Of a stretch of DNA of 64,000 nt, positions 28,365 through 64,000 are shown one piece after another. This DNA is from Lepidodermella squamata (lineage: Eukaryota > Animalia > Gastrotricha). The DNA is taken from the NCBI GenBank assembly GCA_047495785.1, contig JBLDXI010000073.1, forward strand, positions 62,001 to 126,000, written 5' to 3'. The position numbers and the translations under genes are program-made. Numbering within the stretch: the first letter of the stretch is position 1; every line of letters starts with the position of its first letter. The notes under the pieces were generated by a model. That model was not told the DNA's origin. It made no database searches and saw only the letters and a list, made by a program, of their open reading frames with translations.

Positions 28365-30035
28365 GTCGTCTTTGGGTGTGACTTTATTTGAGCTAGCCAA
28401 CTTTTACAGACCTGCTAGTTTTATGTTTCAATCATGTATGTGACTATATCACCAGACTTTTTTCCAGTTTGAGAATGCTTTTCATATCATACAGTAAGTT
28501 TCAATTCTGAAGAGTTTTTCGAAGAATTAAGATAATGAATTTACATAAATGATCGGAAATCTTTTGACGATTCATGCGGTTAATCGCCCGTATTCCGAGC
28601 CATGATTTTTGGGAATTTTTATCAGAGATAGTTCGAGGCGTTAGCTCTTGTTAACTCATTGGAATTCCATAATTGGGTGATCCTAATTCCCAGCTAATTA
28701 TGAGTACCGATCATGAGATCGGTTTTCCAGATTTATTTGATCCAAAAGTTGCGCAAATGGTATGCACGTTCGAATTTGAAATTGTTTATAGTTAATTCCG
28801 CGATTTTGTATTAGCTTTTGTTTCGCCTCATCAGGCAACACAAAACTGACGAAATTGAATCGCTGCTATCAAACTCAACTTTAAAATTGGATGTGAACTG
28901 CACGAATGATGAATACTTTACACTTTAGCCCGTTGCTTCAGGCTGCTCAAAAACGCTGCTGATATAGTAGTTCTTCTTGTAACGGAAAAAGGCCGACCCC
29001 CTACCTAATGATCTATTTTCTATTGGGGTGGTCTTTGTCCGACCTTCATATGCAGCGATGTAGAAAGGAATTCTCAGTTCTAGAACTGAGATGGAGGTCG
29101 GACAAAGACCATTATCATTCTTGGAAGAATTTCAAAAGAAAGCGTAAACATTGCTGCAGTAGATGGTGAGACGCAGTGGAGCTGAGACTGTTGAAATATT
29201 GGCAAAAGAAATGGGTGCGAATACAAAAATAACGAGCGACCAAGGCATGATTTTGTTGCATTTGGCAGTTATGAGAGGCCACTTGGACGTGGTTAAATTA
29301 CTTGGATTTGAATTCTCAGCGGATGCAAAAGTTAAGTCGAATGATGGGAAGACGCCTTTGCATGTGGCTGCTCAGAATGGGAACGCAGAAATGGTTCGAA
29401 TGTTAGCCGGAAAAATGAAAGCTGATGTTAATGATCCTGACAGAGAAAGCAATACGCATTTGTACCTCGCAGTTGAGAAAGGATACGTGGAAGTCGTACG
29501 TGATCTCGTTCAAGAATTCAGCGCAAGCGTTACAATTCCCCGAGACCGGATTGTAAAATCGCCATTGCACGCTGCTGCTCGGAATGGACATACGGAAATG
29601 ATTGTCGCAAAATTCAAAGGTAACATTAACATCCCGGATAGATACAGCCGTACGCTCTTGCAGGCTGCTGCTAAGGGTGGAAATGTGGAAATCGTTTACA
29701 AAGCTGATGTTAACTGCCACCGGCGCATATGACAAGACGACCTTGTACATTGCTGCTGCGGAAGGAAATGCGGAATGCATTAGAATTCCAGTTGGGGAAT
29801 TCAAAGCTGATGTTAATGCCCGTGATGAAAATGACATAACACCCTTGAACGCTGCTGCCGCAAGAGAAGAAGCGGAAGTCGTCAGAATCCTAGCCGGATA
29901 ATTCAAAGCTGACGTTAATATCCCTGATAAAGATTACTTATAGGACGCCCTTGTACATTGCTGCTCAGGGAGAAAATGCAGAAGTCTTTGGAATTCTAGC
30001 TATGGAATTCAATGCTGGAGTTGTTGACCTTGGTA
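28365..30035 (+). pseudogene. 5'-truncated, frameshifted duplicate of the kinase-ankyrin gene
   Basis: Colinear with 39040-41000, including introns (SLGVTLFELANFYRP, FENAFHII, ankyrin exon). Multiple stops, frameshifts and whole-repeat deletions. Confidence 0.92.
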
Positions 30036-37724: not shown

Positions 37725-40700
37725 ATGGCTGCAGGTGTCGGAAATACGTATTCATCAATGCAGGACTTCAAAGTCGAGAAGTTATTAGGAAGCGGTTATT
37801 TCGGCTCAACGATGCTTTGCAGGCGGACCTGGAACGACGTGGCGCCCTACGCTGTCAAGGCGGTCAACCTCACGCGAATTCTTGAAATTTACTCGACGGA
37901 GCCCAAATTCGCAGACAGGCTAGTGAAATTGAGCAAGGAAGAGGTAACGATTTTATCACGCTCTGCTTGCAGCCATTTGATACTATGTATTTTTGCTGTT
38001 GCAGCATGAGAAATTGGCCAAATTGTCACATCCAAATGTTGTTTCTGTATTTGGAGCTTTTATAGGTAGGCTGTGCTACCTGCTACCTTAATTCCTGATC
38101 GGCAAAAAATTGAAGAAAAGTTTGATCGTTTCTCTTCTAAAATGTTTGAAATTTGATGGAAATGTCAGTGGTTTTTAGTCGCTACTGGCTGTGGGAATTG
38201 AGCATATATCTCACCCCAGCCTCTCTCACCAGTCTTAAAAGAACAGAGAAACAACTTTAGGATTAACTTTTTCTACTTAAAAGGGAAAATCCTAATGAGG
38301 TACCAAATTTCATTTAATTCAATACCTAACCATTTTATTTGTTATGTAACTGGTTTGGGTTAGGTTGAGGTCATGGTTAGGTTAGGAATAGGGTAGGTTA
38401 GGGTCAAGTTAGAGTTGAGGGCTGGGTCTTAAACTTGGGAATTTCGAACATATTGCAATAATTTGGTACATAATAATGATGTTTGGTGATGAATTCACTA
38501 CATGCCTTATCTAAACGAAACAAAATGTAATTCCATTAACAAAACTTGACGCTTGAAGGGCTGAACTTTCCTTTTAACTTTCTTTTCTTGTAACAGAGGA
38601 AGATGCATCTGGATCTGTGGTTTATCATCTTGTTATGGAATACTGTTCGGGCGGAGATTTGGATGATTACATGATAAAGGCAAATGGCCGTCCCATTCCT
38701 CAAGTTTTGTTGTTAGAATGGTCGCTACAACTTGCGTCGGCTCTGGCTGCTCTGCATGAAAAGCGAGCGCTCCATCGAGACATCAAACCGAAAAATATTT
38801 TCTTGCAAAACGGTACTGTGAAACTCGGCGATTTTGGTTTAACGAAAATTGATGACAGGTAAGAATATCACTGAATATCAGTCTATTAGAAAGGATAAAT
38901 GTTTTAAAAAATGCCAGCGACACGTTCAGCTCTTCAAGCAGTATCCAAAGGACAGCGTACAACTTCAGGCTTGGTACCGAGCTGTACATGGCACCTGAAT
39001 TATTCGGCAATACTAAGCACTCGAACGAAAGCGATTGGTGGTCTTTAGGTGTAACTTTGTTCGAACTAGCCAACTTTTACAGGCCTGTTAGTCTTATTTC
39101 CCAGTATTGTGCTTTGTTCCACGATGTGGCTTCTTTTCAGTTCGAAAGTGCCCTGGATATCATGCAGTAAGTTCTATTCCTGAATTTCTTCGAAGAATCA
39201 CACTAATGAATTCGCAGATATGTTCGAAAGCCTTTTGATGATTCACGCGGTTATTCGTCCGAATTCCGAACCATTATTTTGGCATTTTTAATCAGAGATA
39301 GTTCGAGGCGCATCCCGCCGCTAGCTTTGCTCGACTCATTGAATGATCCGAATTCCCAGCATATCATGGGCTCAGCTAATGATAGCAGTTCGACAGAGTT
39401 GTTAGATCCAAATTCTCCAAGAATGGTACGCGAATTCCTTACTTGTGATACTTTCGATTTACTATGCCGCTTCAGCTTCTGTTTCGACTCATCAGGCAAC
39501 ACAAAAGTGACGAAATTGAATCGCTGTTATCAGACTCAACTCTAAAATTGGACGTCAATTACAAGAATGATGAAGGCCTTACGCCGTTGTTTCTGGCTGC
39601 ACAAGAGGCTCGCGCTGACATTGTAGACATTTTAGTGACGAAGTTCAAGGCTGATCCCCTATCTACGGACCTATTGGGAAGAACTCCGATGTACATCGCT
39701 GCTGATGGTGGTCGTACAAAGGCGATGAAAATTATTGGAGACTATTCAAAAGAAAGTGTCAACGTTGCGGCGGCCGATAGTAAGACACCAATATGGGCGG
39801 CAGTGGAAAACGGTCACGCTAAGGCCGTTGAAATATTGGCAAAAGAAATGGGTGCGAATGCGACAATAACGAACGAACAAGGCATGACATTGCTGCATGT
39901 TGCAGCCATGGAAGGTCACGTTGAAGTTGCGAGATTTCTGGCTGCGAATTTCATCAAGAATGTGAACACGAAAATGATCTCGGGCTACACACCCTTGCAT
40001 TTGGCAGTTATGAGAAGCCATTTTGACTTGGTGAAATTACTTGGACTTGAATTCTCAGCGGATGCAAAAGTTAAGTCGAATGATGGGAAGACGCCTTTGC
40101 ATGTGGCTGCTCAGAATGGGAACGCAGAAATAGTTCGAATGTTTGCCGGGAAAATGAAAGCTAATGTTAATGACCCTGATAGAGAAGGCAATACGCCTTT
40201 GTACCTTGCAGTCGAGAAAGGATACGTGGAAGTCGTACGTGATCTCGTTCAAGAATTCAGCGCAAAAGTTACAATTCCTCAAGACCGGTTTGTAAAATCG
40301 CCATTGCACGCAGCAGCTTGGAATGGACATGCAGAAATCTTGAAAATGATTATCGCAAAATTCAAAGGTGACATTAACATTCCGCATAAATTCGGCCGTA
40401 CGCTCTTGCAGGCTGCTGCTGAGGGTGGAAATGTGGAAATTGTTACAATTCTGGCCGGCGATTACAAAGCTGATGTCAATGCCACCGGCGAATATGACAA
40501 GACGCCCTTGCACGTTGCTGCTGCGAAGGGAAATGCGGAATGCATTAGAATTTTAGCCGGGAAATTCAAAGCTGATGTTGATGCCCGTGATAAAGATGGC
40601 AGGACGCCCTTGTTCATTGCTGCCTTAAACGGACAAGCGGAAGTCGTAAAAATCCTCGCTGGGGTATTCAAAGCTGATGTTGATGCCCCTGATGAAAATT

Positions 40701-41158
40701 GCGTAACGCCCTTGTATGCTGCAGCCGCAAGTGGAGAAGTGGAAGTCGTTAGAATCCTAGCCGGCGAATTCAAAGCTGATGTTAATGCCCGTGATGAAAG
40801 AGGCAGAACGCCCTTGTATGCTGCTGCCACAAATGGAGAAGCGGAAGTTGTTAGAATCCTAGCCGGCGAATTCAAAGCTGATGTTAATATCCCTGATATA
40901 GCTTATAGGACGCCCTTGTACATTGCTGCTCAGGAAGAAAATGCGGAAGTCGTTAGAATTCTAGCTATGGAATTCAAAGCTGGAGTTGTTGACCTTGATA
41001 AATATGGCAGAACGCCCCTGTATGTTGGTTCGTTTCCAGTGCATACGGTTATCGCTCGTATTCTTGGCGAACCGTTCATAGCAGTCAGGGAATTTGCATT
41101 GGAAGAGATTGACATGACTGCAGGGAAGTGGCATTGGTTTAAATGGGGTTACGGTTAG
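37725..41158 (+). CDS. NEK-like Ser/Thr protein kinase fused to ~14-15 ankyrin repeats (7 exons)
   Basis: Exons approx. 37725-37943, 38006-38065, 38597-38858, 38919-39086, 39141-39166, 39218-39425 and 39475-41158 splice in frame. Motifs GSGYFG, AVK, MEYCSGGDL, HRDIKPKNIFL, DFG, YMAPE and SDWWSLG, then repeated G-x-TPL-x-AA ankyrin units. Confidence 0.9.
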
Positions 41159-45197: not shown

Positions 45198-45600
45198 ATT
45201 AACGATAAAATGTAAGGGTATTTGATTTAAAATGAAATTTGAGAATGAAAATATCTCACACGTTAACGTGAAAAAATGTAAACAGGCTCGTGCCCGAGAG
45301 ACGCGTGTGAAAATGTCTGCAAAAACAACGCCCAGTAATCAATTCGATAAGGCTGCTTAACGGATATAACAAGCCTCAGGGTCAACCAGTTCATCAATGT
45401 CCTTTTTGAAGTGACTATTAGCGTCGCTAAAAGCAAGTCATTAATAAAATCACTCGCTATTATATAGCGAATTATAGGATAATTCGCTATTATATCTATA
45501 ACGATGACCTCGTGAGCCTTTGGTTCTGAATTCTGGCTGCATGGCACCCTCGGTAAAAGGCTATTTACTACCGTCGTTTGGCATGAAAATTGATGTCATT

Positions 45601-46082
45601 CAGAGACTTTGATTTGATTTGATTTGATTGTGATTTGATTTGATTTAGGGCATTTTTTGATGATTTGATTTACTGATGATTTGATTTAGAAAATTTCAGG
45701 ATGATTTGATTTGATTTAAATTTAGCCCACTTGATTTACTGCTGATTTATAAAAATCAGAACTCTCGGAATTCTCCTGTTACTAAACATGAGAACTCACA
45801 TTTGCCTCGAAGACAACTGCTTTCCAAAGCCTGGGGCTATTTGTGCCCTTTCATACTCATTCTGCCAAAACCAAGCTTGAAATTTGAATGAATCCCCAGA
45901 AATTTACCATGATACTCATGTTTCCCTATGCGAAAGATTTGATTTGATTTGATTTAAACGGGCCGGATGATTTGATTTCATTGATTTACTATCGACTTTT
46001 TGGGGATTTGATTTGAAATGATTGATTTACAAAGACCTGTGATTTACTGAATAAATCAAATCAAATCAAATCAAAGTCACTG
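45601..46082. mobile_element. hAT-like MITE with (GATTT)n subterminal repeats
   Basis: CAGAGACTTTGATTTGATTT ... AAATCAAATCAAAGTCACTG; TSD ATGTCATT at 45593-45600 and 46083-46090. Same design as 31845-32269 but a different interior. Confidence 0.9.
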
Positions 46083-48133
46083 ATGTCATTACATTACTTT
46101 TGTTAGCTTTGAGACTCTAAGTATGATTTCTGAAAGAATTTGTGCGGATGATCTTCAACGGACCCCCTACATCTGTAAAACGTTTTAGCGAGTTAATTCC
46201 GAAAATGAGGTCACGGCGAGCTAGTATTTAAAGGTGAGTTAAGGCGGGTAAAAACGACCCAGATGAATTGAATTATCTGAAACCAATCGAAAGGCTTCGA
46301 CTTCAGATGACATTTCTACCTTCGAGCATTTCCTTTTGTGATAAAAGGGAAATAAACCGCGACCCGAGGCGATGCACAGGTATGGGCCAAGTAATGGCGC
46401 CCAAATTGCCCCATGGAAAATTCAATTATGGGGGCGAGTTGGTCTAATTACCAGAACCTGTTGACCGTCCTACGACCACTTGAAAAGGTCAGGAGAAGTG
46501 ACAGGAAAATAAAAAAATTATGTAATCAATTTCAGATTTAATTTAACCGAGGAAGACAGAAAGGACAAGCCGTGTGCCATCGCTGTTTCCGGAAAGGCCA
46601 CTGATCTTTTGTCAACAATGTGTTTTTCGGCGATCACAACCTGTCATTTTAATCCTTTTTCAACTTCATCCTACTGGATAATTCTCTCAAAGATCTTCGA
46701 TTTTATTCATAGTTGATAAGCAATTTCTCGATTTAAAATTGTTTAAGCATGGAAGTGGAACCTTTGGAAACCTTTGGAGGCATGGAAACCAAGAAACAGG
46801 CCACAACAATAATTTCGATCACAACTATCGCCCAATGGGCTCGTTCTGAATCAGACTGACTCGGTTGCGACAGTTTGAGACTTCAAATTTCAAACAATTC
46901 TCCAGCTATAAAATCAACAATGGAGCGAAGCAGCGAGCCACAATTAGTTATTTATCAGTGGGTAGTAGCTCGCCCCGGCTTCCTGGCAGGAGCTGTAGGT
47001 TGTCTTCCACTACGAGTGCGGCCGAGCATGTTTACGACAACTTACTTAAGACAATTTGGAAATTTACTGAATTCTCCATCATCTTGTTCCAAGTTTCAGT
47101 CAATTATTGCAATCAAGAACAATCGTATATTGTATTTCAAAACCAGCCCTCAGAAGAGTGACCAGTTGGGCTACGCTCCTGCCTCAGCCAGAAATGCGCT
47201 CGCCAGCCCGCATCGTCATTCAAATTGAGCGTAGTTTTCGAACCAGCCTTGATGCTGATTAACTGTCCAAATTCGCCGATCGTTTCTTACGCGGAACAGC
47301 CGATGGTAAAATGCATCTAGACGGAGCGCTCCGATTCTGAATTTTTCTATTCACTCGTTCCAATGACGAATTCTTGAAGAGCATTTGGCTCATGAGAGGT
47401 AAAAGCTTTTTTCCGGATCATCAATTAAATTCAGGCCAGGCTTACTTTATTCATTCCACGAAATACAAATCAACCAGAATTATTTTTAGAAAGTAATTCT
47501 CTAGATAGTAGGTGATGATATTTTCTTTTTTATTAGCCGATTTATGTTCACACAAAATGTTCACCAGGTCATGTTGTGTTCACACCACGGGGGAATTTTG
47601 TTCGCAAAAAATGCTTCAATTTACTTCACCTTCCCGTGGTGTGAAAAAGCCTAAAATTATAGACTATGCGTGACAAGTGGGAGAGCGTCTTACGATTTTG
47701 AGTTCAATTCCAATTTCCATGGTATTGGAGTATTTCATCTCATTAGTGAGATTATTAGTGAAGTTAGTGATAAATGAGAGGCCCAAAATTTCATCAAAAT
47801 CCAAATTTAAAAAGCCAAAAGTCACCGGTATGTTTTAAAGAAAATCTACTATAGAAGATATAGGTTAATAGTGAAATATGGCACAGCTGTGAGACAGCTT
47901 GTGTTTCTTCACTCTATAAGATCAACTAATTCTTTAGCCATCTTAACGGTTATGGCGGTATTTCTAAGATCTAAGGTAAAACCTCTTTGAAAAGACTTGT
48001 TTTTAAACATATACCAAAAGTTTACTTCTGAAAATATATAGAGATGCATTTTTCATTAAAAAATAAATAAATAAATATTTTTCAATTCATATATTTCACA
48101 TTCGTTTTTTGATAGTTTTTGTAGCGGTGATCG

Positions 48134-51100
48134 CTAAGCAAAATTTGCCAGGCTTTCGATCAGAATTTGTTGAACAGCGCTTCGGATTGTGTCGAAATCG
48201 ACCGGGCCAGGTGGACCACGAGGGCCGGGTAGACCAATGCCGTTGCGGCCAGCAGGACCAGCAGGACCAGTAAGGCCAACGCCAGTTGGACCAGCGGGGC
48301 CAGCGGGACCAGTAAGGCCAACGCCAGTTGGACCAGGAAGGCCAACGCCAGTTGGACCAGTTGCCCCATCTCTACCAGAAGGACCAGTGGGCCCAGTATC
48401 ACCAGTTCTTCCAGGAAGACCAACACCTGGTCGACCAGCGGAACCCGTGGGACCAGTCATGCCAATACCTGTCGGGCCAGTAGGACCTGTGCCACCATCT
48501 CTGCCATCTCGGCCGGCCGGACCAGCTAGACCCGTTGCGCCTGCAATACCAGTCGCACCATTGTTACCATTTCTACCGGTCGGACCAGTCGCACCAGTCG
48601 CACCTGCGTCACCTGAGAAAAAAATCAAATTATTTGTAAAATTACAGCATCTACTAAGAGAAATTAACATCACCTTTCTGTCCTTTGTCTCCTTTCGGTG
48701 CCATATCTCCAGAAATACCCTTTTCGCCTGTAGAAATACAATAAGAAAGCCAAGCGAGAGTAAATAACAAACAAACAACAAATGATTTACAACAAATGCA
48801 CGACGACATTAAAAGATGGAAATTAGCTGGGTTGCCAGCATCAAACTCAAGAAAGACGATTATCAAACAGACCTTGCACGCCTTGGGGACCTTGCGGGCC
48901 TGAAAATCACGAATAAATTCATGCAAGCTTCAAACCTCAACTGCGAAGCTCAGAACTGTACCTTGAGAACCTAGCGGACCCTGTTCTCCAGTTGCACCAG
49001 TAACACCGGTCGCACCTGTAGCGGGGCGAAATCGGAACAAACGCCAGTTGAGAAGCTTGCTCTCGCTTCGAACCGAGCTCATTCACGTACCTTGTTGACC
49101 TGTGGCTCCTTCAGCGCCTGCATGGTTTTACAAAACAAGAGAAATTCCAGTCAATAAATCGTAACCAAGAGCCTGGATCCTAGCTTCAAAGCTCACCTGT
49201 CGCTCCAGTAGCGCCCTGCCCACCCAGTGGGCCTTCGGAACCTTGCACGCCTTGGGGACCTTGCGAACCAAGCGGACCTTGCGGGCCTGAAAATCACGAA
49301 TAAATTCATGCAAGCTTCAAACCTCAACTTCGAAGATCGCAACTGTACCTTGAGAACCTAGCGGGCCCTGATCTCCGGTTGCACCAGTCACTCCCGTCGC
49401 ACCTGCAGCGGGGCAAAACCGAAGTAGCTCAAAGTTTCGAACAAGCTCGGCTCATTCACGTACCTTGTTGACCTGTGGCTCCATCAGCGCCTGAATGGTT
49501 TCACAAAACAAGAGAAATCGTAACCAAGAGCCTGGATCCTAGCTTCAAAGCTCACCTGTCGCTCCAGTAGCGCCCTGCCCACCCAGTGGGCCTTCGGAAC
49601 CTTGCACGCCTTGGGGACCTTGCGAACCAAGCGGACCTTGCGGGCCTGAAAATCACGAATAAATTCATGCAAGCTTCAAACCTCAACTTCGAAGATCGCA
49701 ACTGTACCTTGAGAACCTAGCGGGCCCTGATCTCCGGTTGCACCAGTCACTCCCGTCGCACCTGCAGCGGGGCAAAACCGAAGTAGCTCAAAGTTTCGAA
49801 CAAGCTCGGCTCATTCACGTACCTTGTTGACCTGTGGCTCCATCAGCGCCTGAATGGTTTCACAAAACAAGAGAAATCGTAACCAAGAGCCTGGATCCTA
49901 GCTTCAAAGCTCACCTGTCGCTCCAGTAGCGCCCTGCCCACCCAGTGGGCCTTCGGAACCTTGCACGCCTTGGGGACCTTGCGAACCAAGCGGACCTTGC
50001 GGGCCTGAAAATCACGAATAAATTCATGCAAGCTTCAAACCTCAACTTCGAAGATCGCAACTGTACCTTGAGAACCTAGCGGGCCCTGATCTCCGGTTGC
50101 ACCAGTCACTCCCGTCGCACCTGCAGCGGGGCAAAACCGAAGTAGCTCAAAGTTTCGAACAAGCTCGGCTCATTCACGTACCTTGTTGACCTGTGGCTCC
50201 ATCAGCGCCTGAATGGTTTCACAAAACAAGAGAAATCGTAACCAAGAGCCTGGATCCTAGCTTCAAAGCTCACCTGTCGCTCCAGTAGCGCCCTGCCCAC
50301 CCAGTGGGCCTTCGGAACCTTGCACGCCTTGGGGACCTTGCGAACCAAGCGGACCTTGCGGGCCTGAAAATCACGAATAAATTCATGCAAGCTTCAAACC
50401 TCAACTTCGAAGATCGCAACTGTACCTTGAGAACCTAGCGGGCCCTGATCTCCGGTTGCACCAGTCACTCCCGTCGCACCTGCAGCGGGGCAAAACCGAA
50501 GTAGCTCAAAGTTTCGAACAAGCTCGGCTCATTCACGTACCTTGTTGACCTGTGGCTCCATCAGCGCCTGAATGGTTTCACAAAACAAGAGAAATCGTAA
50601 CCAAGAGCCTGGATCCTAGCTTCAAAGCTCACCTGTCGCTCCAGTAGCGCCCTGCCCACCCAGTGGGCCTTCGGAACCTTGCACGCCTTGGGGACCTTGC
50701 GAACCAAGCGGACCTTGCGGGCCTGGAAATCACGAATAAATTCATGCAAGCTTCAAACCTCAACTTCGAAGATCGCAACTGTACCTTGAGAACCTAGCGG
50801 GCCCTGATCTCCGGTTGCACCAGTCACTCCCGTCGCACCTGCAGCGGGGCAAAACCGAAGTAGCTCAAAGTTTCGAACAAGCTCGGCTCATTCACGTACC
50901 TTGTTGACCTGTGGCTCCATCAGCGCCTGAATGGTTTCACAAAACAAGAGAAATCGTAACCAAGAGCCTGGATCCTAGCTTCAAAGCTCACCTGTCGCTC
51001 CAGTAGCGCCCTGCCCACCCAGTGGGCCTTCGGAACCTTGCACGCCTTGGGGACCTTGCGAACCAAGCGGACCTTGCGGGCCTGAAAATCACGAATAAAT

Positions 51101-54100
51101 TCATGCAAGCTTCAAACCTCAACTTCGAAGATCGCAACTGTACCTTGAGAACCTAGCGGGCCCTGATCTCCGGTTGCACCAGTCACTCCCGTCGCACCTG
51201 CAGCGGGGCAAAACCGAAGTAGCTCAAAGTTTCGAACAAGCTCGGCTCATTCACGTACCTTGTTGACCTGTGGCTCCATCAGCGCCTGAATGGTTTCACA
51301 AAACAAGAGAAATCGTAACCAAGAGCCTGGATCCTAGCTTCAAAGCTCACCTGTCGCTCCAGTAGCGCCCTGCCCACCCAGTGGGCCTTCGGAACCTTGC
51401 ACGCCTTGGGGACCTTGCGAACCAAGCGGACCTTGCGGGCCTGGAAATCACGAATAAATTCATGCAAGCTTCAAACCTCAACTTCGAAGATCGCAACTGT
51501 ACCTTGAGAACCTAGCGGGCCCTGATCTCCGGTTGCACCAGTCACTCCCGTCGCACCTGCAGCGGGGCAAAACCGAAGTAGCTCAAAGTTTCGAACAAGC
51601 TCGGCTCATTCACGTACCTTGTTGACCTGTGGCTCCATCAGCGCCTGAATGGTTTCACAAAACAAGAGAAATCGTAACCAAGAGCCTGGATCCTAGCTTC
51701 AAAGCTCACCTGTCGCTCCAGTAGCGCCCTGCCCACCCAGTGGGCCTTCGGAACCTTGCACGCCTTGGGGACCTTGCGAACCAAGCGGACCTTGCGGGCC
51801 TGAAAATCACGAATAAATTCATGCAAGCTTCAAACCTCAACTTCGAAGATCGCAACTGTACCTTGAGAACCTAGCGGGCCCTGATCTCCGGTTGCACCAG
51901 TCACTCCCGTCGCACCTGCAGCGGGGCAAAACCGAAGTAGCTCAAAGTTTCGAACAAGCTCGGCTCATTCACGTACCTTGTTGACCTGTGGCTCCATCAG
52001 CGCCTGAATGGTTTCACAAAACAAGAGAAATCGTAACCAAGAGCCTGGATCCTAGCTTCAAAGCTCACCTGTCGCTCCAGTAGCGCCCTGCCCACCCAGT
52101 GGGCCTTCGGAACCTTGCACGCCTTGGGGACCTTGCGAACCAAGCGGACCTTGCGGGCCTGAAAATCACGAATAAATTCATGCAAGCTTCAAACCTCAAC
52201 TTCGAAGATCGCAACTGTACCTTGAGAACCTAGCGGGCCCTGATCTCCGGTTGCACCAGTCACTCCCGTCGCACCTGCAGCGGGGCAAAACCGAAGTAGC
52301 TCAAAGTTTCGAACAAGCTCGGCTCATTCACGTACCTTGTTGACCTGTGGCTCCATCAGCGCCTGAATGGTTTCACAAAACAAGAGAAATCGTAACCAAG
52401 AGCCTGGATCCTAGCTTCAAAGCTCACCTGTCGCTCCAGTAGCGCCCTGCCCACCCAGTGGGCCTTCGGAACCTTGCACGCCTTGGGGACCTTGCGAACC
52501 AAGCGGACCTTGCGGGCCTGAAAATCACGAATAAATTCATGCAAGCTTCAAACCTCAACTTCGAAGATCGCAACTGTACCTTGAGAACCTAGCGGGCCCT
52601 GATCTCCGGTTGCACCAGTCACTCCCGTCGCACCTGCAGCGGGGCAAAACCGAAGTAGCTCAAAGTTTCGAACAAGCTCGGCTCATTCACGTACCTTGTT
52701 GACCTGTGGCTCCATCAGCGCCTGAATGGTTTCACAAAACAAGAGAAATCGTAACCAAGAGCCTGGATCCTAGCTTCAAAGCTCACCTGTCGCTCCAGTA
52801 GCGCCCTGCCCACCCAGTGGGCCTTCGGAACCTTGCACGCCTTGGGGACCTTGCGAACCAAGCGGACCTTGCGGGCCTGGAAATCACGAATAAATTCATG
52901 CAAGCTTCAAACCTCAACTTCGAAGATCGCAACTGTACCTTGAGAACCTAGCGGGCCCTGATCTCCGGTTGCACCAGTCACTCCCGTCGCACCTGCAGCG
53001 GGGCAAAACCGAAGTAGCTCAAAGTTTCGAACAAGCTCGGCTCATTCACGTACCTTGTTGACCTGTGGCTCCATCAGCGCCTGAATGGTTTCACAAAACA
53101 AGAGAAATCGTAACCAAGAGCCTGGATCCTAGCTTCAAAGCTCACCTGTCGCTCCAGTAGCGCCCTGCCCACCCAGTGGGCCTTCGGAACCTTGCACGCC
53201 TTGGGGACCTTGCGAACCAAGCGGACCTTGCGGGCCTGAAAATCACGAATAAATTCATGCAAGCTTCAAACCTCAACTTCGAAGATCGCAACTGTACCTT
53301 GAGAACCTAGCGGGCCCTGATCTCCGGTTGCACCAGTCACTCCCGTCGCACCTGCAGCGGGGCAAAACCGAAGTAGCTCAAAGTTTCGAACAAGCTCGGC
53401 TCATTCACGTACCTTGTTGACCTGTGGCTCCATCAGCGCCTGAATGGTTTCACAAAACAAGAGAAATCGTAACCAAGAGCCTGGATCCTAGCTTCAAAGC
53501 TCACCTGTCGCTCCAGTAGCGCCCTGCCCACCCAGTGGGCCTTCGGAACCTTGCACGCCTTGGGGACCTTGCGAACCAAGCGGACCTTGCGGGCCTGGAA
53601 ATCACGAATAAATTCATGCAAGCTTCAAACCTCAACTTCGAAGATCGCAACTGTACCTTGAGAACCTAGCGGGCCCTGATCTCCGGTTGCACCAGTCACT
53701 CCCGTCGCACCTGCAGCGGGGCAAAACCGAAGTAGCTCAAAGTTTCGAACAAGCTCGGCTCATTCACGTACCTTGTTGACCTGTGGCTCCATCAGCGCCT
53801 GAATGGTTTCACAAAACAAGAGAAATCGTAACCAAGAGCCTGGATCCTAGCTTCAAAGCTCACCTGTCGCTCCAGTAGCGCCCTGCCCACCCAGTGGGCC
53901 TTCGGAACCTTGCACGCCTTGGGGACCTTGCGAACCAAGCGGACCTTGCGGGCCTGAAAATCACGAATAAATTCATGCAAGCTTCAAACCTCAACTTCGA
54001 AGATCGCAACTGTACCTTGAGAACCTAGCGGGCCCTGATCTCCGGTTGCACCAGTCACTCCCGTCGCACCTGCAGCGGGGCAAAACCGAAGTAGCTCAAA

Positions 54101-57100
54101 GTTTCGAACAAGCTCGGCTCATTCACGTACCTTGTTGACCTGTGGCTCCATCAGCGCCTGAATGGTTTCACAAAACAAGAGAAATCGTAACCAAGAGCCT
54201 GGATCCTAGCTTCAAAGCTCACCTGTCGCTCCAGTAGCGCCCTGCCCACCCAGTGGGCCTTCGGAACCTTGCACGCCTTGGGGACCTTGCGAACCAAGCG
54301 GACCTTGCGGGCCTGGAAATCACGAATAAATTCATGCAAGCTTCAAACCTCAACTTCGAAGATCGCAACTGTACCTTGAGAACCTAGCGGGCCCTGATCT
54401 CCGGTTGCACCAGTCACTCCCGTCGCACCTGCAGCGGGGCAAAACCGAAGTAGCTCAAAGTTTCGAACAAGCTCGGCTCATTCACGTACCTTGTTGACCT
54501 GTGGCTCCATCAGCGCCTGAATGGTTTCACAAAACAAGAGAAATCTTAACCAAGAGCCTGGATCCTAGCTTCAAAGCTCACCTGTCGCTCCAGTAGCGCC
54601 CTGCCCACCCAGTGGGCCTTCGGAACCTTGCACGCCTTGGGGACCTTGCGAACCAAGCGGACCTTGCGGGCCTGAAAATCACGAATAAATTCATGCAAGC
54701 TTCAAACCTCAACTTCGAAGATCGCAACTGTACCTTGAGAACCTAGCGGGCCCTGATCTCCGGTTGCACCAGTCACTCCCGTCGCACCTGCAGCGGGGCA
54801 AAACCGAAGTAGCTCAAAGTTTCGAACAAGCTCGGCTCATTCACGTACCTTGTTGACCTGTGGCTCCATCAGCGCCTGAATGGTTTCACAAAACAAGAGA
54901 AATCGTAACCAAGAGCCTGGATCCTAGCTTCAAAGCTCACCTGTCGCTCCAGTAGCGCCCTGCCCACCCAGTGGGCCTTCGGAACCTTGCACGCCTTGGG
55001 GACCTTGCGAACCAAGCGGACCTTGCGGGCCTGAAAATCACGAATAAATTCATGCAAGCTTCAAACCTCAACTTCGAAGATCGCAACTGTACCTTGAGAA
55101 CCTAGCGGGCCCTGATCTCCGGTTGCACCAGTCACTCCCGTCGCACCTGCAGCGGGGCAAAACCGAAGTAGCTCAAAGTTTCGAACAAGCTCGGCTCATT
55201 CACGTACCTTGTTGACCTGTGGCTCCATCAGCGCCTGAATGGTTTCACAAAACAAGAGAAATCGTAACCAAGAGCCTGGATCCTAGCTTCAAAGCTCACC
55301 TGTCGCTCCAGTAGCGCCCTGCCCACCCAGTGGGCCTTCGGAACCTTGCACGCCTTGGGGACCTTGCGAACCAAGCGGACCTTGCGGGCCTGGAAATCAC
55401 GAATAAATTCATGCAAGCTTCAAACCTCAACTTCGAAGATCGCAACTGTACCTTGAGAACCTAGCGGGCCCTGATCTCCGGTTGCACCAGTCACTCCCGT
55501 CGCACCTGCAGCGGGGCAAAACCGAAGTAGCTCAAAGTTTCGAACAAGCTCGGCTCATTCACGTACCTTGTTGACCTGTGGCTCCATCAGCGCCTGAATG
55601 GTTTCACAAAACAAGAGAAATCGTAACCAAGAGCCTGGATCCTAGCTTCAAAGCTCACCTGTCGCTCCAGTAGCGCCCTGCCCACCCAGTGGGCCTTCGG
55701 AACCTTGCACGCCTTGGGGACCTTGCGAACCAAGCGGACCTTGCGGGCCTGAAAATCACGAATAAATTCATGCAAGCTTCAAACCTCAACTTCGAAGATC
55801 GCAACTGTACCTTGAGAACCTAGCGGGCCCTGATCTCCGGTTGCACCAGTCACTCCCGTCGCACCTGCAGCGGGGCAAAACCGAAGTAGCTCAAAGTTTC
55901 GAACAAGCTCGACTCATTCACGTACCTTGTTGACCTGTGGCTCCATCAGCGCCTGAATGGTTTCACAAAACAAGAGAAATCGTAACCAAGAGCCTGGATC
56001 CTAGCTTCAAAGCTCACCTGTCGCTCCAGTAGCGCCCTGCCCACCCAGTGGGCCTTCGGAACCTTGCACGCCTTGGGGACCTTGCGAACCAAGCGGACCT
56101 TGCGGGCCTGGAAATCACGAATAAATTCATGCAAGCTTCAAACCTCAACTTCGAAGATCGCAACTGTACCTTGAGAACCTAGCGGGCCCTGATCTCCGGT
56201 TGCACCAGTCACTCCCGTCGCACCTGCAGCGGGGCAAAACCGAAGTAGCTCAAAGTTTCGAACAAGCTCGGCTCATTCACGTACCTTGTTGACCTGTGGC
56301 TCCATCAGCGCCTGAATGGTTTCACAAAACAAGAGAAATCGTAACCAAGAGCCTGGATCCTAGCTTCAAAGCTCACCTGTCGCTCCAGTAGCGCCCTGCC
56401 CACCCAGTGGGCCTTCGGAACCTTGCACGCCTTGGGGACCTTGCGAACCAAGCGGACCTTGCGGGCCTGAAAATCACGAATAAATTCATGCAAGCTTCAA
56501 ACCTCAACTTCGAAGATCGCAACTGTACCTTGAGAACCTAGCGGGCCCTGATCTCCGGTTGCACCAGTCACTCCCGTCGCACCTGCAGCGGGGCAAAACC
56601 GAAGTAGCTCAAAGTTTCGAACAAGCTCGGCTCATTCACGTACCTTGTTGACCTGTGGCTCCATCAGCGCCTGAATGGTTTCACAAAACAAGAGAAATCG
56701 TAACCAAGAGCCTGGATCCTAGCTTCAAAGCTCACCTGTCGCTCCAGTAGCGCCCTGCCCACCCAGTGGGCCTTCGGAACCTTGCACGCCTTGGGGACCT
56801 TGCGAACCAAGCGGACCTTGCGGGCCTGGAAATCACGAATAAATTCATGCAAGCTTCAAACCTCAACTTCGAAGATCGCAACTGTACCTTGAGAACCTAG
56901 CGGGCCCTGATCTCCGGTTGCACCAGTCACTCCCGTCGCACCTGCAGCGGGGCAAAACCGAAGTAGCTCAAAGTTTCGAACAAGCTCGGCTCATTCACGT
57001 ACCTTGTTGACCTGTGGCTCCATCAGCGCCTGAATGGTTTCACAAAACAAGAGAAATCGTAACCAAGAGCCTGGATCCTAGCTTCAAAGCTCACCTGTCG

Positions 57101-60100
57101 CTCCAGTAGCGCCCTGCCCACCCAGTGGGCCTTCGGAACCTTGCACGCCTTGGGGACCTTGCGAACCAAGCGGACCTTGCGGGCCTGAAATCACGAATAA
57201 ATTCATGCAAGCTTCAAACCTCAACTTCGAAGATCGCAACTGTACCTTGAGAACCTAGCGGGCCCTGATCTCCGGTTGCACCAGTCACTCCCGTCGCACC
57301 TGCAGCGGGGCAAAACCGAAGTAGCTCAAAGTTTCGAACAAGCTCGGCTCATTCACGTACCTTGTTGACCTGTGGCTCCATCAGCGCCTGAATGGTTTCA
57401 CAAACAAGAGAAATCGTAACCAAGAGCCTGGATCCTAGCTTCAAAGCTCACCTGTCGCTCCAGTAGCGCCCTGCCCACCCAGTGGGCCTTCGGAACCTTG
57501 CACGCCTTGGGGACCTTGCGAACCAAGCGGACCTTGCGGGCCTGGAAATCACGAATAAATTCATGCAAGCTTCAAACCTCAACTTCGAAGATCGCAACTG
57601 TACCTTGAGAACCTAGCGGGCCCTGATCTCCGGTTGCACCAGTCACTCCCGTCGCACCTGCAGCGGGGCAAAACCGAAGTAGCTCAAAGTTTCGAACAAG
57701 CTCGGCTCATTCACGTACCTTGTTGACCTGTGGCTCCATCAGCGCCTGAATGGTTTCACAAAACAAGAGAAATCGTAACCAAGAGCCTGGATCCTAGCTT
57801 CAAAGCTCACCTGTCGCTCCAGTAGCGCCCTGCCCACCCAGTGGGCCTTCGGAACCTTGCACGCCTTGGGGACCTTGCGAACCAAGCGGACCTTGCGGGC
57901 CTGAAAATCACGAATAAATTCATGCAAGCTTCAAACCTCAACTTCGAAGATCGCAACTGTACCTTGAGAACCTAGCGGGCCCTGATCTCCGGTTGCACCA
58001 GTCACTCCCGTCGCACCTGCAGCGGGGCAAAACCGAAGTAGCTCAAAGTTTCGAACAAGCTCGACTCATTCACGTACCTTGTTGACCTGTGGCTCCATCA
58101 GCGCCTGAATGGTTTCACAAAACAAGAGAAATCGTAACCAAGAGCCTGGATCCTAGCTTCAAAGCTCACCTGTCGCTCCAGTAGCGCCCTGCCCACCCAG
58201 TGGGCCTTCGGAACCTTGCACGCCTTGGGGACCTTGCGAACCAAGCGGACCTTGCGGGCCTGGAAATCACGAATAAATTCATGCAAGCTTCAAACCTCAA
58301 CTTCGAAGATCGCAACTGTACCTTGAGAACCTAGCGGGCCCTGATCTCCGGTTGCACCAGTCACTCCCGTCGCACCTGCAGCGGGGCAAAACCGAAGTAG
58401 CTCAAAGTTTCGAACAAGCTCGGCTCATTCACGTACCTTGTTGACCTGTGGCTCCATCAGCGCCTGAATGGTTTCACAAAACAAGAGAAATCGTAACCAA
58501 GAGCCTGGATCCTAGCTTCAAAGCTCACCTGTCGCTCCAGTAGCGCCCTGCCCACCCAGTGGGCCTTCGGAACCTTGCACGCCTTGGGGACCTTGCGAAC
58601 CAAGCGGACCTTGCGGGCCTGAAAATCACGAATAAATTCATGCAAGCTTCAAACCTCAACTTCGAAGATCGCAACTGTACCTTGAGAACCTAGCGGGCCC
58701 TGATCTCCGGTTGCACCAGTCACTCCCGTCGCACCTGCAGCGGGGCAAAACCGAAGTAGCTCAAAGTTTCGAACAAGCTCGGCTCATTCACGTACCTTGT
58801 TGACCTGTGGCTCCATCAGCGCCTGAATGGTTTCACAAAACAAGAGAAATCGTAACCAAGAGCCTGGATCCTAGCTTCAAAGCTCACCTGTCGCTCCAGT
58901 AGCGCCCTGCCCACCCAGTGGGCCTTCGGAACCTTGCACGCCTTGGGGACCTTGCGAACCAAGCGGACCTTGCGGGCCTGAAAATCACGAATAAATTCAT
59001 GCAAGCTTCAAACCTCAACTTCGAAGATCGCAACTGTACCTTGAGAACCTAGCGGGCCCTGATCTCCGGTTGCACCAGTCACTCCCGTCGCACCTGCAGC
59101 GGGGCAAAACCGAAGTAGCTCAAAGTTTCGAACAAGCTCGGCTCATTCACGTACCTTGTTGACCTGTGGCTCCATCAGCGCCTGAATGGTTTCACAAAAC
59201 AAGAGAAATCGTAACCAAGAGCCTGGATCCTAGCTTCAAAGCTCACCTGTCGCTCCAGTAGCGCCCTGCCCACCCAGTGGGCCTTCGGAACCTAGCACGC
59301 CTTGGGGACCTTGCGAACCAAGCGGACCTTGCGGGCCTGAAAATCACGAATAAATTCATGCAAGCTTCAAACCTCAACTTCGAAGATCGCAACTGTACCT
59401 TGAGAACCTAGCGGGCCCTGATCTCCGGTTGCACCAGTCACTCCCGTCGCACCTGCAGCGGGGCAAAACCGAAGTAGCTCAAAGTTTCGAACAAGCTCGG
59501 CTCATTCACGTACCTTGTTGACCTGTGGCTCCATCAGCGCCTGAATGGTTTCACAAAACAAGAGAAATCGTAACCAAGAGCCTGGATCCTAGCTTCAAAG
59601 CTCACCTGTCGCTCCAGTAGCGCCCTGCCCACCCAGTGGGCCTTCGGAACCTTGCACGCCTTGGGGACCTTGCGAACCAAGCGGACCTTGCGGGCCTGAA
59701 AATCACGAATAAATTCATGCAAGCTTCAAACCTCAACTTCGAAGATCGCAACTGTACCTTGAGAACCTAGCGGGCCCTGATCTCCGGTTGCACCAGTCAC
59801 TCCCGTCGCACCTGCAGCGGGGCAAAACCGAAGTAGCTCAAAGTTTCGAACAAGCTCGGCTCATTCACGTACCTTGTTGACCTGTGGCTCCATCAGCGCC
59901 TGAATGGTTTCACAAAACAAGAGAAATCGTAACCAAGAGCCTGGATCCTAGCTTCAAAGCTCACCTGTCGCTCCAGTAGCGCCCTGCCCACCCAGTGGGC
60001 CTTCGGAACCTTGCACGCCTTGGGGACCTTGCGAACCAAGCGGACCTTGCGGGCCTGAAAATCACGAATAAATTCATGCAAGCTTCAAACCTCAACTTCG

Positions 60101-63100
60101 AAGATCGCAACTGTACCTTGAGAACCTAGCGGGCCCTGATCTCCGGTTGCACCAGTCACTCCCGTCGCACCTGCAGCGGGGCAAAACCGAAGTAGCTCAA
60201 AGTTTCGAACAAGCTCGGCTCATTCACGTACCTTGTTGACCTGTGGCTCCATCAGCGCCTGAATGGTTTCACAAAACAAGAGAAATCGTAACCAAGAGCC
60301 TGGATCCTAGCTTCAAAGCTCACCTGTCGCTCCAGTAGCGCCCTGCCCACCCAGTGGGCCTTCGGAACCTTGCACGCCTTGGGGACCTTGCGAACCAAGC
60401 GGACCTTGCGGGCCTGAAAATCACGAATAAATTCATGCAAGCTTCAAACCTCAACTTCGAAGATCGCAACTGTACCTTGAGAACCTAGCGGGCCCTGATC
60501 TCCGGTTGCACCAGTCACTCCCGTCGCACCTGCAGCGGGGCAAAACCGAAGTAGCTCAAAGTTTCGAACAAGCTCGACTCATTCACGTACCTTGTTGACC
60601 TGTGGCTCCATCAGCGCCTGAATGGTTTCACAAAACAAGAGAAATCGTAACCAAGAGCCTGGATCCTAGCTTCAAAGCTCACCTGTCGCTCCAGTAGCGC
60701 CCTGCCCACCCAGTGGGCCTTCGGAACCTTGCACGCCTTGGGGACCTTGCGAACCAAGCGGACCTTGCGGGCCTGGAAATCACGAATAAATTCATGCAAG
60801 CTTCAAACCTCAACTTCGAAGATCGCAACTGTACCTTGAGAACCTAGCGGGCCCTGATCTCCGGTTGCACCAGTCACTCCCGTCGCACCTGCAGCGGGGC
60901 AAAACCGAAGTAGCTCAAAGTTTCGAACAAGCTCGGCTCATTCACGTACCTTGTTGACCTGTGGCTCCATCAGCGCCTGAATGGTTTCACAAAACAAGAG
61001 AAATCGTAACCAAGAGCCTGGATCCTAGCTTCAAAGCTCACCTGTCGCTCCAGTAGCGCCCTGCCCACCCAGTGGGCCTTCGGAACCTTGCACGCCTTGG
61101 GGACCTTGCGAACCAAGCGGACCTTGCGGGCCTGAAAATCACGAATAAATTCATGCAAGCTTCAAACCTCAACTTCGAAGATCGCAACTGTACCTTGAGA
61201 ACCTAGCGGGCCCTGATCTCCGGTTGCACCAGTCACTCCCGTCGCACCTGCAGCGGGGCAAAACCGAAGTAGCTCAAAGTTTCGAACAAGCTCGGCTCAT
61301 TCACGTACCTTGTTGACCTGTGGCTCCATCAGCGCCTGAATGGTTTCACAAAACAAGAGAAATCGTAACCAAGAGCCTGGATCCTAGCTTCAAAGCTCAC
61401 CTGTCGCTCCAGTAGCGCCCTGCCCACCCAGTGGGCCTTCGGAACCTTGCACGCCTTGGGGACCTTGCGAACCAAGCGGACCTTGCGGGCCTGAAAATCA
61501 CGAATAAATTCATGCAAGCTTCAAACCTCAACTTCGAAGATCGCAACTGTACCTTGAGAACCTAGCGGGCCCTGATCTCCGGTTGCACCAGTCACTCCCG
61601 TCGCACCTGCAGCGGGGCAAAACCGAAGTAGCTCAAAGTTTCGAACAAGCTCGGCTCATTCACGTACCTTGTTGACCTGTGGCTCCATCAGCGCCTGAAT
61701 GGTTTCACAAAACAAGAGAAATCGTAACCAAGAGCCTGGATCCTAGCTTCAAAGCTCACCTGTCGCTCCAGTAGCGCCCTGCCCACCCAGTGGGCCTTCG
61801 GAACCTTGCACGCCTTGGGGACCTTGCGAACCAAGCGGACCTTGCGGGCCTGAAAATCACGAATAAATTCATGCAAGCTTCAAACCTCAACTTCGAAGAT
61901 CGCAACTGTACCTTGAGAACCTAGCGGGCCCTGATCTCCGGTTGCACCAGTCACTCCCGTCGCACCTGCAGCGGGGCAAAACCGAAGTAGCTCAAAGTTT
62001 CGAACAAGCTCGGCTCATTCACGTACCTTGTTGACCTGTGGCTCCATCAGCGCCTGAATGGTTTCACAAAACAAGAGAAATCGTAACCAAGAGCCTGGAT
62101 CCTAGCTTCAAAGCTCACCTGTCGCTCCAGTAGCGCCCTGCCCACCCAGTGGGCCTTCGGAACCTTGCACGCCTTGGGGACCTTGCGAACCAAGCGGACC
62201 TTGCGGGCCTGGAAATCACGAATAAATTCATGCAAGCTTCAAACCTCAACTTCGAAGATCGCAACTGTACCTTGAGAACCTAGCGGGCCCTGATCTCCGG
62301 TTGCACCAGTCACTCCCGTCGCACCTGCAGCGGGGCAAAACCGAAGTAGCTCAAAGTTTCGAACAAGCTCGGCTCATTCACGTACCTTGTTGACCTGTGG
62401 CTCCATCAGCGCCTGAATGGTTTCACAAAACAAGAGAAATCGTAACCAAGAGCCTGGATCCTAGCTTCAAAGCTCACCTGTCGCTCCAGTAGCGCCCTGC
62501 CCACCCAGTGGGCCTTCGGAACCTTGCACGCCTTGGGGACCTTGCGAACCAAGCGGACCTTGCGGGCCTGAAAATCACGAATAAATTCATGCAAGCTTCA
62601 AACCTCAACTTCGAAGATCGCAACTGTACCTTGAGAACCTAGCGGGCCCTGATCTCCGGTTGCACCAGTCACTCCCGTCGCACCTGCAGCGGGGCAAAAC
62701 CGAAGTAGCTCAAAGTTTCGAACAAGCTCGGCTCATTCACGTACCTTGTTGACCTGTGGCTCCATCAGCGCCTGAATGGTTTCACAAAACAAGAGAAATC
62801 GTAACCAAGAGCCTGGATCCTAGCTTCAAAGCTCACCTGTCGCTCCAGTAGCGCCCTGCCCACCCAGTGGGCCTTCGGAACCTTGCACGCCTTGGGGACC
62901 TTGCGAACCAAGCGGACCTTGCGGGCCTGAAAATCACGAATAAATTCATGCAAGCTTCAAACCTCAACTTCGAAGATCGCAACTGTACCTTGAGAACCTA
63001 GCGGGCCCTGATCTCCGGTTGCACCAGTCACTCCCGTCGCACCTGCAGCGGGGCAAAACCGAAGTAGCTCAAAGTTTCGAACAAGCTCGGCTCATTCACG

Positions 63101-64000
63101 TACCTTGTTGACCTGTGGCTCCATCAGCGCCTGAATGGTTTCACAAAACAAGAGAAATCGTAACCAAGAGCCTGGATCCTAGCTTCAAAGCTCACCTGTC
63201 GCTCCAGTAGCGCCCTGCCCACCCAGTGGGCCTTCGGAACCTTGCACGCCTTGGGGACCTTGCGAACCAAGCGGACCTTGCGGGCCTGAAAATCACGAAT
63301 AAATTCATGCAAGCTTCAAACCTCAACTTCGAAGATCGCAACTGTACCTTGAGAACCTAGCGGGCCCTGATCTCCGGTTGCACCAGTCACTCCCGTCGCA
63401 CCTGCAGCGGGGCAAAACCGAAGTAGCTCAAAGTTTCGAACAAGCTCGGCTCATTCACGTACCTTGTTGACCTGTGGCTCCATCAGCGCCTGAATGGTTT
63501 CACAAAACAAGAGAAATCGTAACCAAGAGCCTGGATCCTAGCTTCAAAGCTCACCTGTCGCTCCAGTAGCGCCCTGCCCACCCAGTGGGCCTTCGGAACC
63601 TTGCACGCCTTGGGGACCTTGCGAACCAAGCGGACCTTGCGGGCCTGAAAATCACGAATAAATTCATGCAAGCTTCAAACCTCAACTTCGAAGATCGCAA
63701 CTGTACCTTGAGAACCTAGCGGGCCCTGATCTCCGGTTGCACCAGTCACTCCCGTCGCACCTGCAGCGGGGCAAAACCGAAGTAGCTCAAAGTTTCGAAC
63801 AAGCTCGGCTCATTCACGTACCTTGTTGACCTGTGGCTCCATCAGCGCCTGAATGGTTTCACAAAACAAGAGAAATCGTAACCAAGAGCCTGGATCCTAG
63901 CTTCAAAGCTCACCTGTCGCTCCAGTAGCGCCCTGCCCACCCAGTGGGCCTTCGGAACCTTGCACGCCTTGGGGACCTTGCGAACCAAGCGGACCTTGCG
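48134..64000 (-). CDS. Giant collagen-like protein, 3' portion (5' end outside window); at least 129 exons in window
   Basis: 42 three-exon units (last unit: 49286-49197, 49117-49091, 49015-48962), then exons 48899-48873 (GPQGPQGVQ), 48727-48674 ([18 protein letters not shown]) and 48612-48134 (GDAGATGAT...[30 protein letters not shown]). All introns are GT-AG and phase 1. Confidence 0.9.
48900..64000 (-). repeat. 359-bp tandem array (42 units, nearly identical) forming an exon-intron cassette of the collagen gene
   Basis: The 3' border of exon A recurs from 49197 to 63914, which is 41 x 359 minus two 1-bp intron deletions. Unit = 90+65+27+61+54+62 = 359. Confidence 0.97.

Follow-up and report, generated by a model that had tools for sequence, protein, structure and literature searches.

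The DNA analysed here, a stretch of 64,000 nt from the gastrotrich Lepidodermella squamata (contig JBLDXI010000073.1, positions 62,001 to 126,000; called the window in the following), carries a collagen locus that is read on the minus strand. Using Tandem Repeats Finder, positions 49156-64000 were identified as one array with a period of 359 nt, 41.4 copies and 99% matches. Delimiting the units by anchoring on the start of the first exon of each cassette (exon A) resolved 41 near-identical 359-bp cassettes at 49289-64000 on the minus strand, 40 of them full and one clipped at the window edge, past which the array runs on. Measured from this anchor, 39 of the 40 full units were 359 bp and one was 357 bp long. 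A diverged unit of 387 bp brings the total for the window to 42 units (1 cut at the edge, with exon A minus 3 nt, 40 full and 1 diverged). Beyond the diverged unit a truncated exon A was found, termed exon A-short below.

Each cassette, in the order of the minus strand, consists of exon A, intron 1, exon B, intron 2, exon C and intron 3. The unit reads ttttcag/exon A of 90 nt/gtgagc, a 65-nt intron, ttcag/exon B of 27 nt/gtacgt, a 61-nt intron, tgcag/exon C of 54 nt/gtacag and a 62-nt intron. In a standard unit exons A, B and C were located at 49556-49645, 49464-49490 and 49349-49402, respectively, all on the minus strand and with phase-1 borders on either side; throughout the locus the exon borders fall after the first base of a glycine codon. 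A total of 129 predicted exons and 128 introns were counted in the window, with GT-AG borders in 128 of 128 introns and a G+C content of 0.59-0.68 for exons versus 0.37-0.52 for introns. Splicing one unit in silico yielded 57 amino acids or 19 triplets. For the whole window, the spliced coding sequence of 7,739 nt was translated into 2,578 amino acids with one stop codon, located at the very end, and the Gly-X-Y pattern continued unbroken for 803 triplets (2,409 amino acids) until the sequence GDM-APK in an exon near the 3' end (exon D). An earlier note on this DNA, made from the letters alone, had proposed the exon and intron sizes, the 57-residue unit and the junctions ACAG/GCGC, CAAG/GTGC and CAAG/GCCC; minus-strand reading and splicing confirmed the sizes and the unit, and the junctions were correct as predicted sequence. 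Its count of 42 units and about 800 triplets agreed with the 42 units and 803 triplets found. Equally, the array was still running at the window edge, where the last unit is clipped, and the claimed in-frame passage into unique C-terminal collagen exons was recovered as a continuous spliced frame to the stop at 48134.

Before splicing, the longest open stretch within a unit was 63 codons, and no frame crossed a unit on either strand. A chance satellite, or an open reading frame (ORF) in another frame, was ruled out, as no open frame spans a unit. The recurrent ORF of 62 amino acids with a TTG start (e.g. 62047-62235, minus strand) turned out to span intron 3, exon A and intron 1 in a frame other than that of the collagen, so that the earlier remark that this ORF lies in the wrong frame was right. 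Three segments bounded by GT and AG, each a multiple of 9 nt, join into a perfect glycine frame, and this frame carries on into the unique collagen exons; such an arrangement is not to be expected of a satellite by chance. The spliced product, with its 803 triplets and a match to the Pfam family Collagen (PF01391), falls within the collagen superfamily as defined by the repeat.

At the 3' end of the gene, the array is followed by the diverged last unit (48900-49288, minus strand; 387 bp from the CAG at 49289 to 48903). Its exon A (49286-49197) equals the standard one, followed by exon B' (49117-49091) and exon C' (49015-48962), and from the middle of intron 1 onward this unit matches a paralogous cassette type of high copy number. 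Next comes exon A-short (48873-48899, minus strand, 27 nt), which corresponds to the first half of exon A less 18 nt and has its donor at the intron position of the paralog. An intron of 145 nt separates it from exon D (48674-48727, minus strand, 54 nt), a lysine-rich exon with 4 Lys, in which the first break of the helix occurs by alanine in place of glycine (GDM-APK). After a further intron of 61 nt, the terminal exon (48134-48612, minus strand) encodes 136 amino acids of collagen and a tail of 22 amino acids, ending at the TAG stop codon at 48136-48134. The collagen part of this exon is interrupted at six points, each time by one residue in the pattern G-[IV]-G-[LM]-[PT]-G, is alone within the protein in having prolines in Y, and ends in the imino-rich sequence GPRGPPGP. 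It is this exon that matched Pfam Collagen, with an E-value of 3.4e-12 and 46.4 bits versus a cut-off of 27.2. Within it, at 48234-48405, tandem repeats of 42, 24 and 27 nt encode blocks of GPTGVGL[PT]GPAGPAG, each with one one-residue interruption G-V-G-L-x-G; the motif recurs in viral collagen-like matches, for example P0140.

The non-collagenous C-terminal tail of 22 amino acids (48137-48202, minus strand) was predicted to form an amphipathic alpha-helix. Using AlphaFold2 with a single sequence, a helix was obtained at residues 56-74 of 75 with pLDDT values (the model's per-residue confidence) of 84-94, while the collagen part stayed unmodelled, as expected. Hydrophobic residues of the tail are spaced by 3 to 4 positions (F3, I6, V10, I13/L14, L18, F21). 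This spacing would fit a short trimerising coiled coil, and the tail is a candidate trimerisation or nucleation element.

Sequence variation was analysed along the array and between the array and the diverged unit. The array units were more than 99.7% identical, with 23 of them identical to each other, and on the basis of this identity the array appears to be young or under homogenisation. Five variant sites were intronic, both 1-nt deletions included, and one was exonic; all insertions and deletions were intronic. The intronic changes comprised T/C at position -4 of the exon A acceptor (14 units), C/T in intron 2 (3 units), C>A in intron 1 (one unit) and two single-T deletions, both found in the unit of 357 bp (57188-57544, minus strand). 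The sole exon variant of the array, at 59294 on the minus strand, changes CAA to CTA and thereby Gln to Leu at a Y position, leaving the glycine periodicity intact. The T/C difference before the exon A acceptor followed a two-unit alternation from unit 14 to unit 22, which creates a higher-order repeat of 718 bp, and was irregular elsewhere. This alternating pattern suggests duplication of blocks of at least two cassettes. Comparing the standard with the diverged unit, 7 substitutions and no insertions or deletions were observed in 171 nt of exon, 5 of them synonymous and 2 exchanging Asp for Glu (pN/pS 0.16, Fisher p = 0.023), versus 12 substitutions and 40 gap columns in the introns.

These data bear on the possibility that the array is a silent recent amplification of collagen exons, i.e. 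a pseudogene or a local satellite derived from a gene, which is intact because it is young. Such an origin would agree with the lack of expression evidence described below, and the near identity of the units makes the intactness of the array weak evidence by itself. However, the array joins in frame unique exons whose divergence is older and shaped by constraint, as seen from the synonymous bias, the restriction of insertions and deletions to multiples of 9 nt and the conservation of the tail. Moreover, the single exon variant spares the helix, and read depth confines the array to few loci. We therefore regarded a silent copy as improbable.

Paralogs of the cassette were seen as loose ends of contigs from X1, the sole DNA sequencing run holding the locus; such ends were located at 49016, 49154 and 49245. 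In one X1 contig, exon C' is directly preceded (from 49016) by collagen coding sequence in the same frame, with intron 2 missing exactly at the predicted border. Another departs from exon A at 49245, after 45 nt, into an intron starting with GTGAGT, which is the donor position of exon A-short. Gain or loss of introns precisely at predicted borders is the kind of trace that real splice sites leave. By sequence comparison, the standard and the paralogous cassette would differ by the exact presence or absence of introns, and the 90-nt exon A shows itself as the likely fusion of two 45-nt exons of the paralogous cassette. Contigs of three further runs (X2, X4 and X5) contained a related cassette with an in-frame insertion of 18 nt, i.e. 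two triplets, in exon A-short, behind 48888. A contig of 148 nt from the same set spans the tail with 92% identity; classing its changes by translating the listed differences gave 4 synonymous ones and the conservative exchanges A>T, F>Y and D>E. These three runs, labelled as other organisms or metagenomes, a biofilm metagenome among them, contained cassette DNA of 90-99% identity with introns included (48876-49154 and 48104-48430), which points to the probable occurrence of the animal or a close relative in environmental samples.

The number of cassettes was approached via the depth of the X1 contigs. Single-copy flanks showed a contig depth of 33-38, contigs of the standard unit (49338-49644) a depth of 569-597 or about 16x flank, and contigs of the paralogous type (48913-49154) a depth of 868-949 or about 25x flank. 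Reference-like depth at 49275 was 480 (about 13x flank), and summed bins reached 1,000-1,350. Taken together, contigs specific to the repeat were 16-27x as deep as the flanks. We were aware of the fact that contig depth is not equal to copy number and that X1 may stem from another individual. The reads prove the multi-copy state independently of the assembly graph. A genome-wide satellite was ruled out, the depth in X1 being merely 16-40x flank.

With about 16 units, the helix would be of fibrillar collagen size at about 330 triplets. Consequently, a real gene has to be considered in which the copy number is inflated by the assembly or represents one long allele, the typical product comprising about 15-25 cassettes with 300-500 triplets and being of fibrillar rather than giant size. 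Next to the depth values of the standard unit and of position 49275, the fact that arrays of more than 15 kb with units of more than 99.7% identity are hard to size even by accurate long reads would favour this explanation. The same depth values are limited as evidence by the two reservations on X1 just named, and they may under-count in general, as even the paralogous cassette came to just about 25x flank. Furthermore, collapse of such arrays during assembly is a more frequent error than expansion. Finally, irregular singleton markers (59294, the unit at 57544 and the unit at 54674) and the non-periodic T/C pattern speak against a simple loop in the graph. Overall, a product of ordinary fibrillar length appeared possible to us, if rather doubtful.

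Analysing the composition of the repeat, X positions of one unit were occupied by Ala (6), Pro (5), Ser (3), Val (2), Gly (1), Gln (1) and Asp (1), and Y positions by Gln (8), Thr (6), Leu (3), Glu (1) and Asp (1). Proline accounted for 26% of X and 0% of Y, with Y consisting of 32% Thr and 42% Gln. Human collagens have 33-42% proline or hydroxyproline in Y. The repeat is devoid of Lys, Arg and Cys and carries a net charge of -3 per unit. For the complete product encoded in the window 4 Lys, 9 Arg and no Cys, Tyr, Trp or His were counted, with an isoelectric point of about 4 and a mass of about 226 kDa. In prokaryotic collagens, proline in X and threonine in Y were described as a rule (PMC8968730). 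The composition of the repeat is odd for an animal collagen and matches this prokaryotic rule. A horizontal origin from bacteria, prompted by this composition, was rejected, given that the searches described below brought up no specific bacterial relative and that the gene has 128 introns.

With such a composition the product might be no triple helix at all, but a flexible, possibly heavily glycosylated polymer rich in Gly, Gln and Thr, serving for example as gel or adhesive. In the repeat, the lack of proline in Y, a total proline content of 9%, the absence of Lys and Arg and a share of acidic residues of 5% are in line with this idea, as is the report that an unglycosylated (Gly-Pro-Thr)10 peptide forms a random coil (PMC11923368). 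On the other hand, 803 consecutive triplets without loss of one glycine have no known explanation besides the packing of a triple helix. In addition, bacterial and annelid cuticle collagens with proline in X and threonine in Y do form helices (PMC8968730, PMC11766948), and the C-terminal GPP-rich end followed by a helix is a typical layout for nucleation. A non-helical polymer was thus judged unlikely.

Comparing the deduced protein with known collagens, a mixture of shared and distinct features became visible. The classic 54-bp-exon model holds that collagen genes grew by exon amplification. In common with fibrillar collagens, the exons measure 27, 45, 54 or 90 nt, all multiples of 9, the unbroken helix has grown by exon duplication and folding presumably starts at the C-terminus. 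Fibrillar collagen exons start with an intact glycine codon, and the fibrillar helix comprises about 338 triplets; here, glycine codons are split in phase 1, and at least 803 triplets were found as assembled, the true number being uncertain. Other differences to the fibrillar type are the absence of a COLFI C-propeptide, the chain ending 22 amino acids past the last triplet with Collagen as the only Pfam match, and a repeat without proline in Y and without lysine for lysyl-oxidase cross-links. For the NC1 (C4) domain of type IV and spongin short-chain collagens, no Pfam match was obtained, and no Cys was present in the 2,578 amino acids. Nematode cuticle collagens have Gly-X-Y blocks that are short and interrupted, with conserved Cys clusters on their flanks (PMC11766948), in contrast to the single unbroken block of 2,409 amino acids without Cys found here. 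Unlike collectins and C1q-type proteins, the protein has no globular recognition domain but just the 22-residue helix, so that the likeness to the collectin 'neck' is one of position only.

As assembled, the product would resemble the annelid cuticle collagens in length and in its use of threonine. According to PMC2443231 and PMC11766948, which cite Gaill et al. 1991/1995 and Mann et al. 1996, rods of up to about 2.4 micrometres without banded fibrils were observed for Nereis, Riftia and Alvinella by electron microscopy, with threonine in place of 4-hydroxyproline in the stabilising Y position, and PMC11923368 and PMC11766948, citing Mann 1996, describe glycosylated threonine in place of hydroxyproline for Riftia cuticle collagen. 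The annelid helices of 0.9-2.5 micrometres with threonine-rich Y positions, known by protein chemistry and partial peptides alone, compare with at least 0.69 micrometre as assembled and 32% Thr in Y for the gastrotrich sequence. Differences consist in Gln being as common as Thr in Y and in no globule being seen at the C-terminal end. With prokaryotic and viral collagen-like proteins the product shares proline in X and threonine or glutamine in Y (PMC8968730), but these are intron-less and their helices usually short or interrupted, while 128 introns of the spliceosomal type were found here; among the 150 best matches the longest unbroken run was 192 triplets. With respect to gene architecture, LPA kringle IV-2 and spider flagelliform silk, the latter with homogenised introns, represent amplified whole exon-intron units. 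The collagen locus is alike in that the complete exon-intron unit was amplified and is kept near-identical by unequal exchange, with protein length following copy number. The fold is a different one, and the unit is much smaller, with 359 bp and three exons. Homogenisation of silk genes is discussed in PMC9779670 and PMC3563967.

Considering anatomy, frame, constraint and copy number together, the locus very likely belongs to a genuine protein-coding collagen gene, of which the window would cover at least four-fifths, counted from the 3' end, and the helix of which would be encoded by tandem 359-bp three-exon cassettes. A number of observations weigh against this interpretation. Among the sequencing runs holding the locus there was no RNA run; X4, a metagenomic run labelled 'RNA-Seq', gave contigs that include introns and is hence DNA-like. 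No spliced joint was detected in the contigs from the other runs, all of which contained introns and represent DNA. In the 330 nt past the stop codon, no AATAAA was found, and the N-terminus, signal peptide and promoter fall beyond the window edge. The array units are too alike for decay to show, and taken alone the array is compatible with a very young dead one. With 9% imino acids and 5% charged residues, all acidic, in the repeat, a stable triple helix is not assured without modification. Searching the terminal exon plus tail in JGI metagenomes, in 1.84 billion representatives (phmmer), in 5.8 billion proteins (word-indexed) and in the ESM Atlas yielded no specific relative. The matches were generic bacterial, archaeal and viral collagen-like proteins covering the Gly-X-Y part only, and alignments reaching into the tail (P0140, P0174, P0232) were few and unconvincing. 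Lastly, the depth of the standard unit, about 16x flank, contrasts with the at least 41 units assembled. The earlier note had named read depth as a check on the array. Its outcome was mixed, with many copies recovered at a level below that of the assembly, and it constitutes no refutation given that depth and copy number are not the same.

Assuming expression, the architecture itself raises the question of isoforms. Identical phase-1 cassettes might be skipped freely, which would produce a ladder of shorter chains instead of one chain of about 2,600 amino acids or more. Symmetric exons with identical donors and acceptors for each type would permit this, since any pair of a donor and a downstream acceptor keeps the frame. 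From general knowledge of splicing, however, introns of 61-65 nt favour intron definition and thereby the pairing of neighbouring sites, and we gave free skipping little weight.

For an expressed cassette collagen gene the following scheme may be drawn. Because of the phase-1 exon ends throughout, any number of cassettes splices into a seamless Gly-X-Y frame. The three-exon cassette would have arisen from the paralogous four-exon cassette via precise loss of one intron, and unequal crossing-over between cassettes would add or remove 19 triplets of helix per step with the frame kept. Once transcribed and translated, the product would be a secreted, strongly acidic chain. The 22-residue helix of the tail and the imino-rich GPP end may bring three chains into register and nucleate the trimer, and zippering would then proceed from the C- to the N-terminus through the rod encoded by the cassettes. 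Stability might be provided by hydration networks or O-glycosylated threonine and not by 4-hydroxyproline. That the four lysines of exon D, next to the Gln-rich rod, could be transglutaminase partners is pure speculation.

How long the rod is depends on the cassette number. Taking 0.286 nm per residue, the 2,409 residues of the assembled helix add up to 0.69 micrometre, in accordance with the arithmetic of the earlier note. Its larger claim of a giant uninterrupted collagen was substantiated in part: the spliced cassette, the collagen frame and the in-frame C-terminal exons stood, while the 0.7 micrometre would hold for an expressed gene of the assembled length. In its full form, which we put forward tentatively and with less than even confidence, the proposal would be a homotrimeric rod built of more than 800 unbroken triplets and measuring at least 0.7 micrometre, to which the 5' units beyond the window edge would add further length, a hydroxyproline-independent, Thr/Gln-stabilised polyanion of 'bacterial' composition. 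It would be encoded by a gene of 130-plus exons and tuned in length in 19-triplet steps by unequal exchange. This would provide the first full gene-level account of giant rods like those of the annelid cuticle, hidden from repeat-masked annotation and from tryptic proteomics.

If expressed as assembled, the helix would rank with the longest that are known, from sequence, to run through a collagen without interruption. The maximum for human collagens is 1,380 residues, with interruptions (PMC11923368), and a survey of 2008 found the longest unbroken runs to be merely about 10% above fibrillar size (PMC2443231). Provided that the proposal is true, the protein would be a test case for folding without 4-hydroxyproline in Y or charge pairs, for the way in which zippering over 2,400 residues stays in register, and for the real-time evolution of the length of a structural protein by cassette exchange. 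As the array is classed as satellite, repeat masking hides the gene, and as the repeat lacks Lys and Arg, the protein would go unseen by standard tryptic proteomics. Similar giant collagens may be systematically overlooked in invertebrate genomes.

Outside the collagen gene, Rfam and tRNA scans of the window gave no match, and a Pfam search with ten of its other ORFs was likewise negative. At 45600-46110, in the region downstream of the collagen gene, TTTGA/TGATT microsatellite patches ('aaatcaaatcaaatca') are scattered over about 500 bp. Two intron-free ORFs with ankyrin repeats were found on the plus strand, one of 564 amino acids at 39464-41158 and one of 189 amino acids at 29163-29732; the larger one shows an internal tandem periodicity of 102/306 nt and was absent from the protein collection searched. 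On the minus strand, an ORF of 332 amino acids at 19920-20918 encodes a trypsin-like serine protease (Pfam Trypsin, E = 5.5e-45). Its best matches among 5.8 billion proteins were 32-38% identical, which indicates that the lineage is poorly represented in databases.

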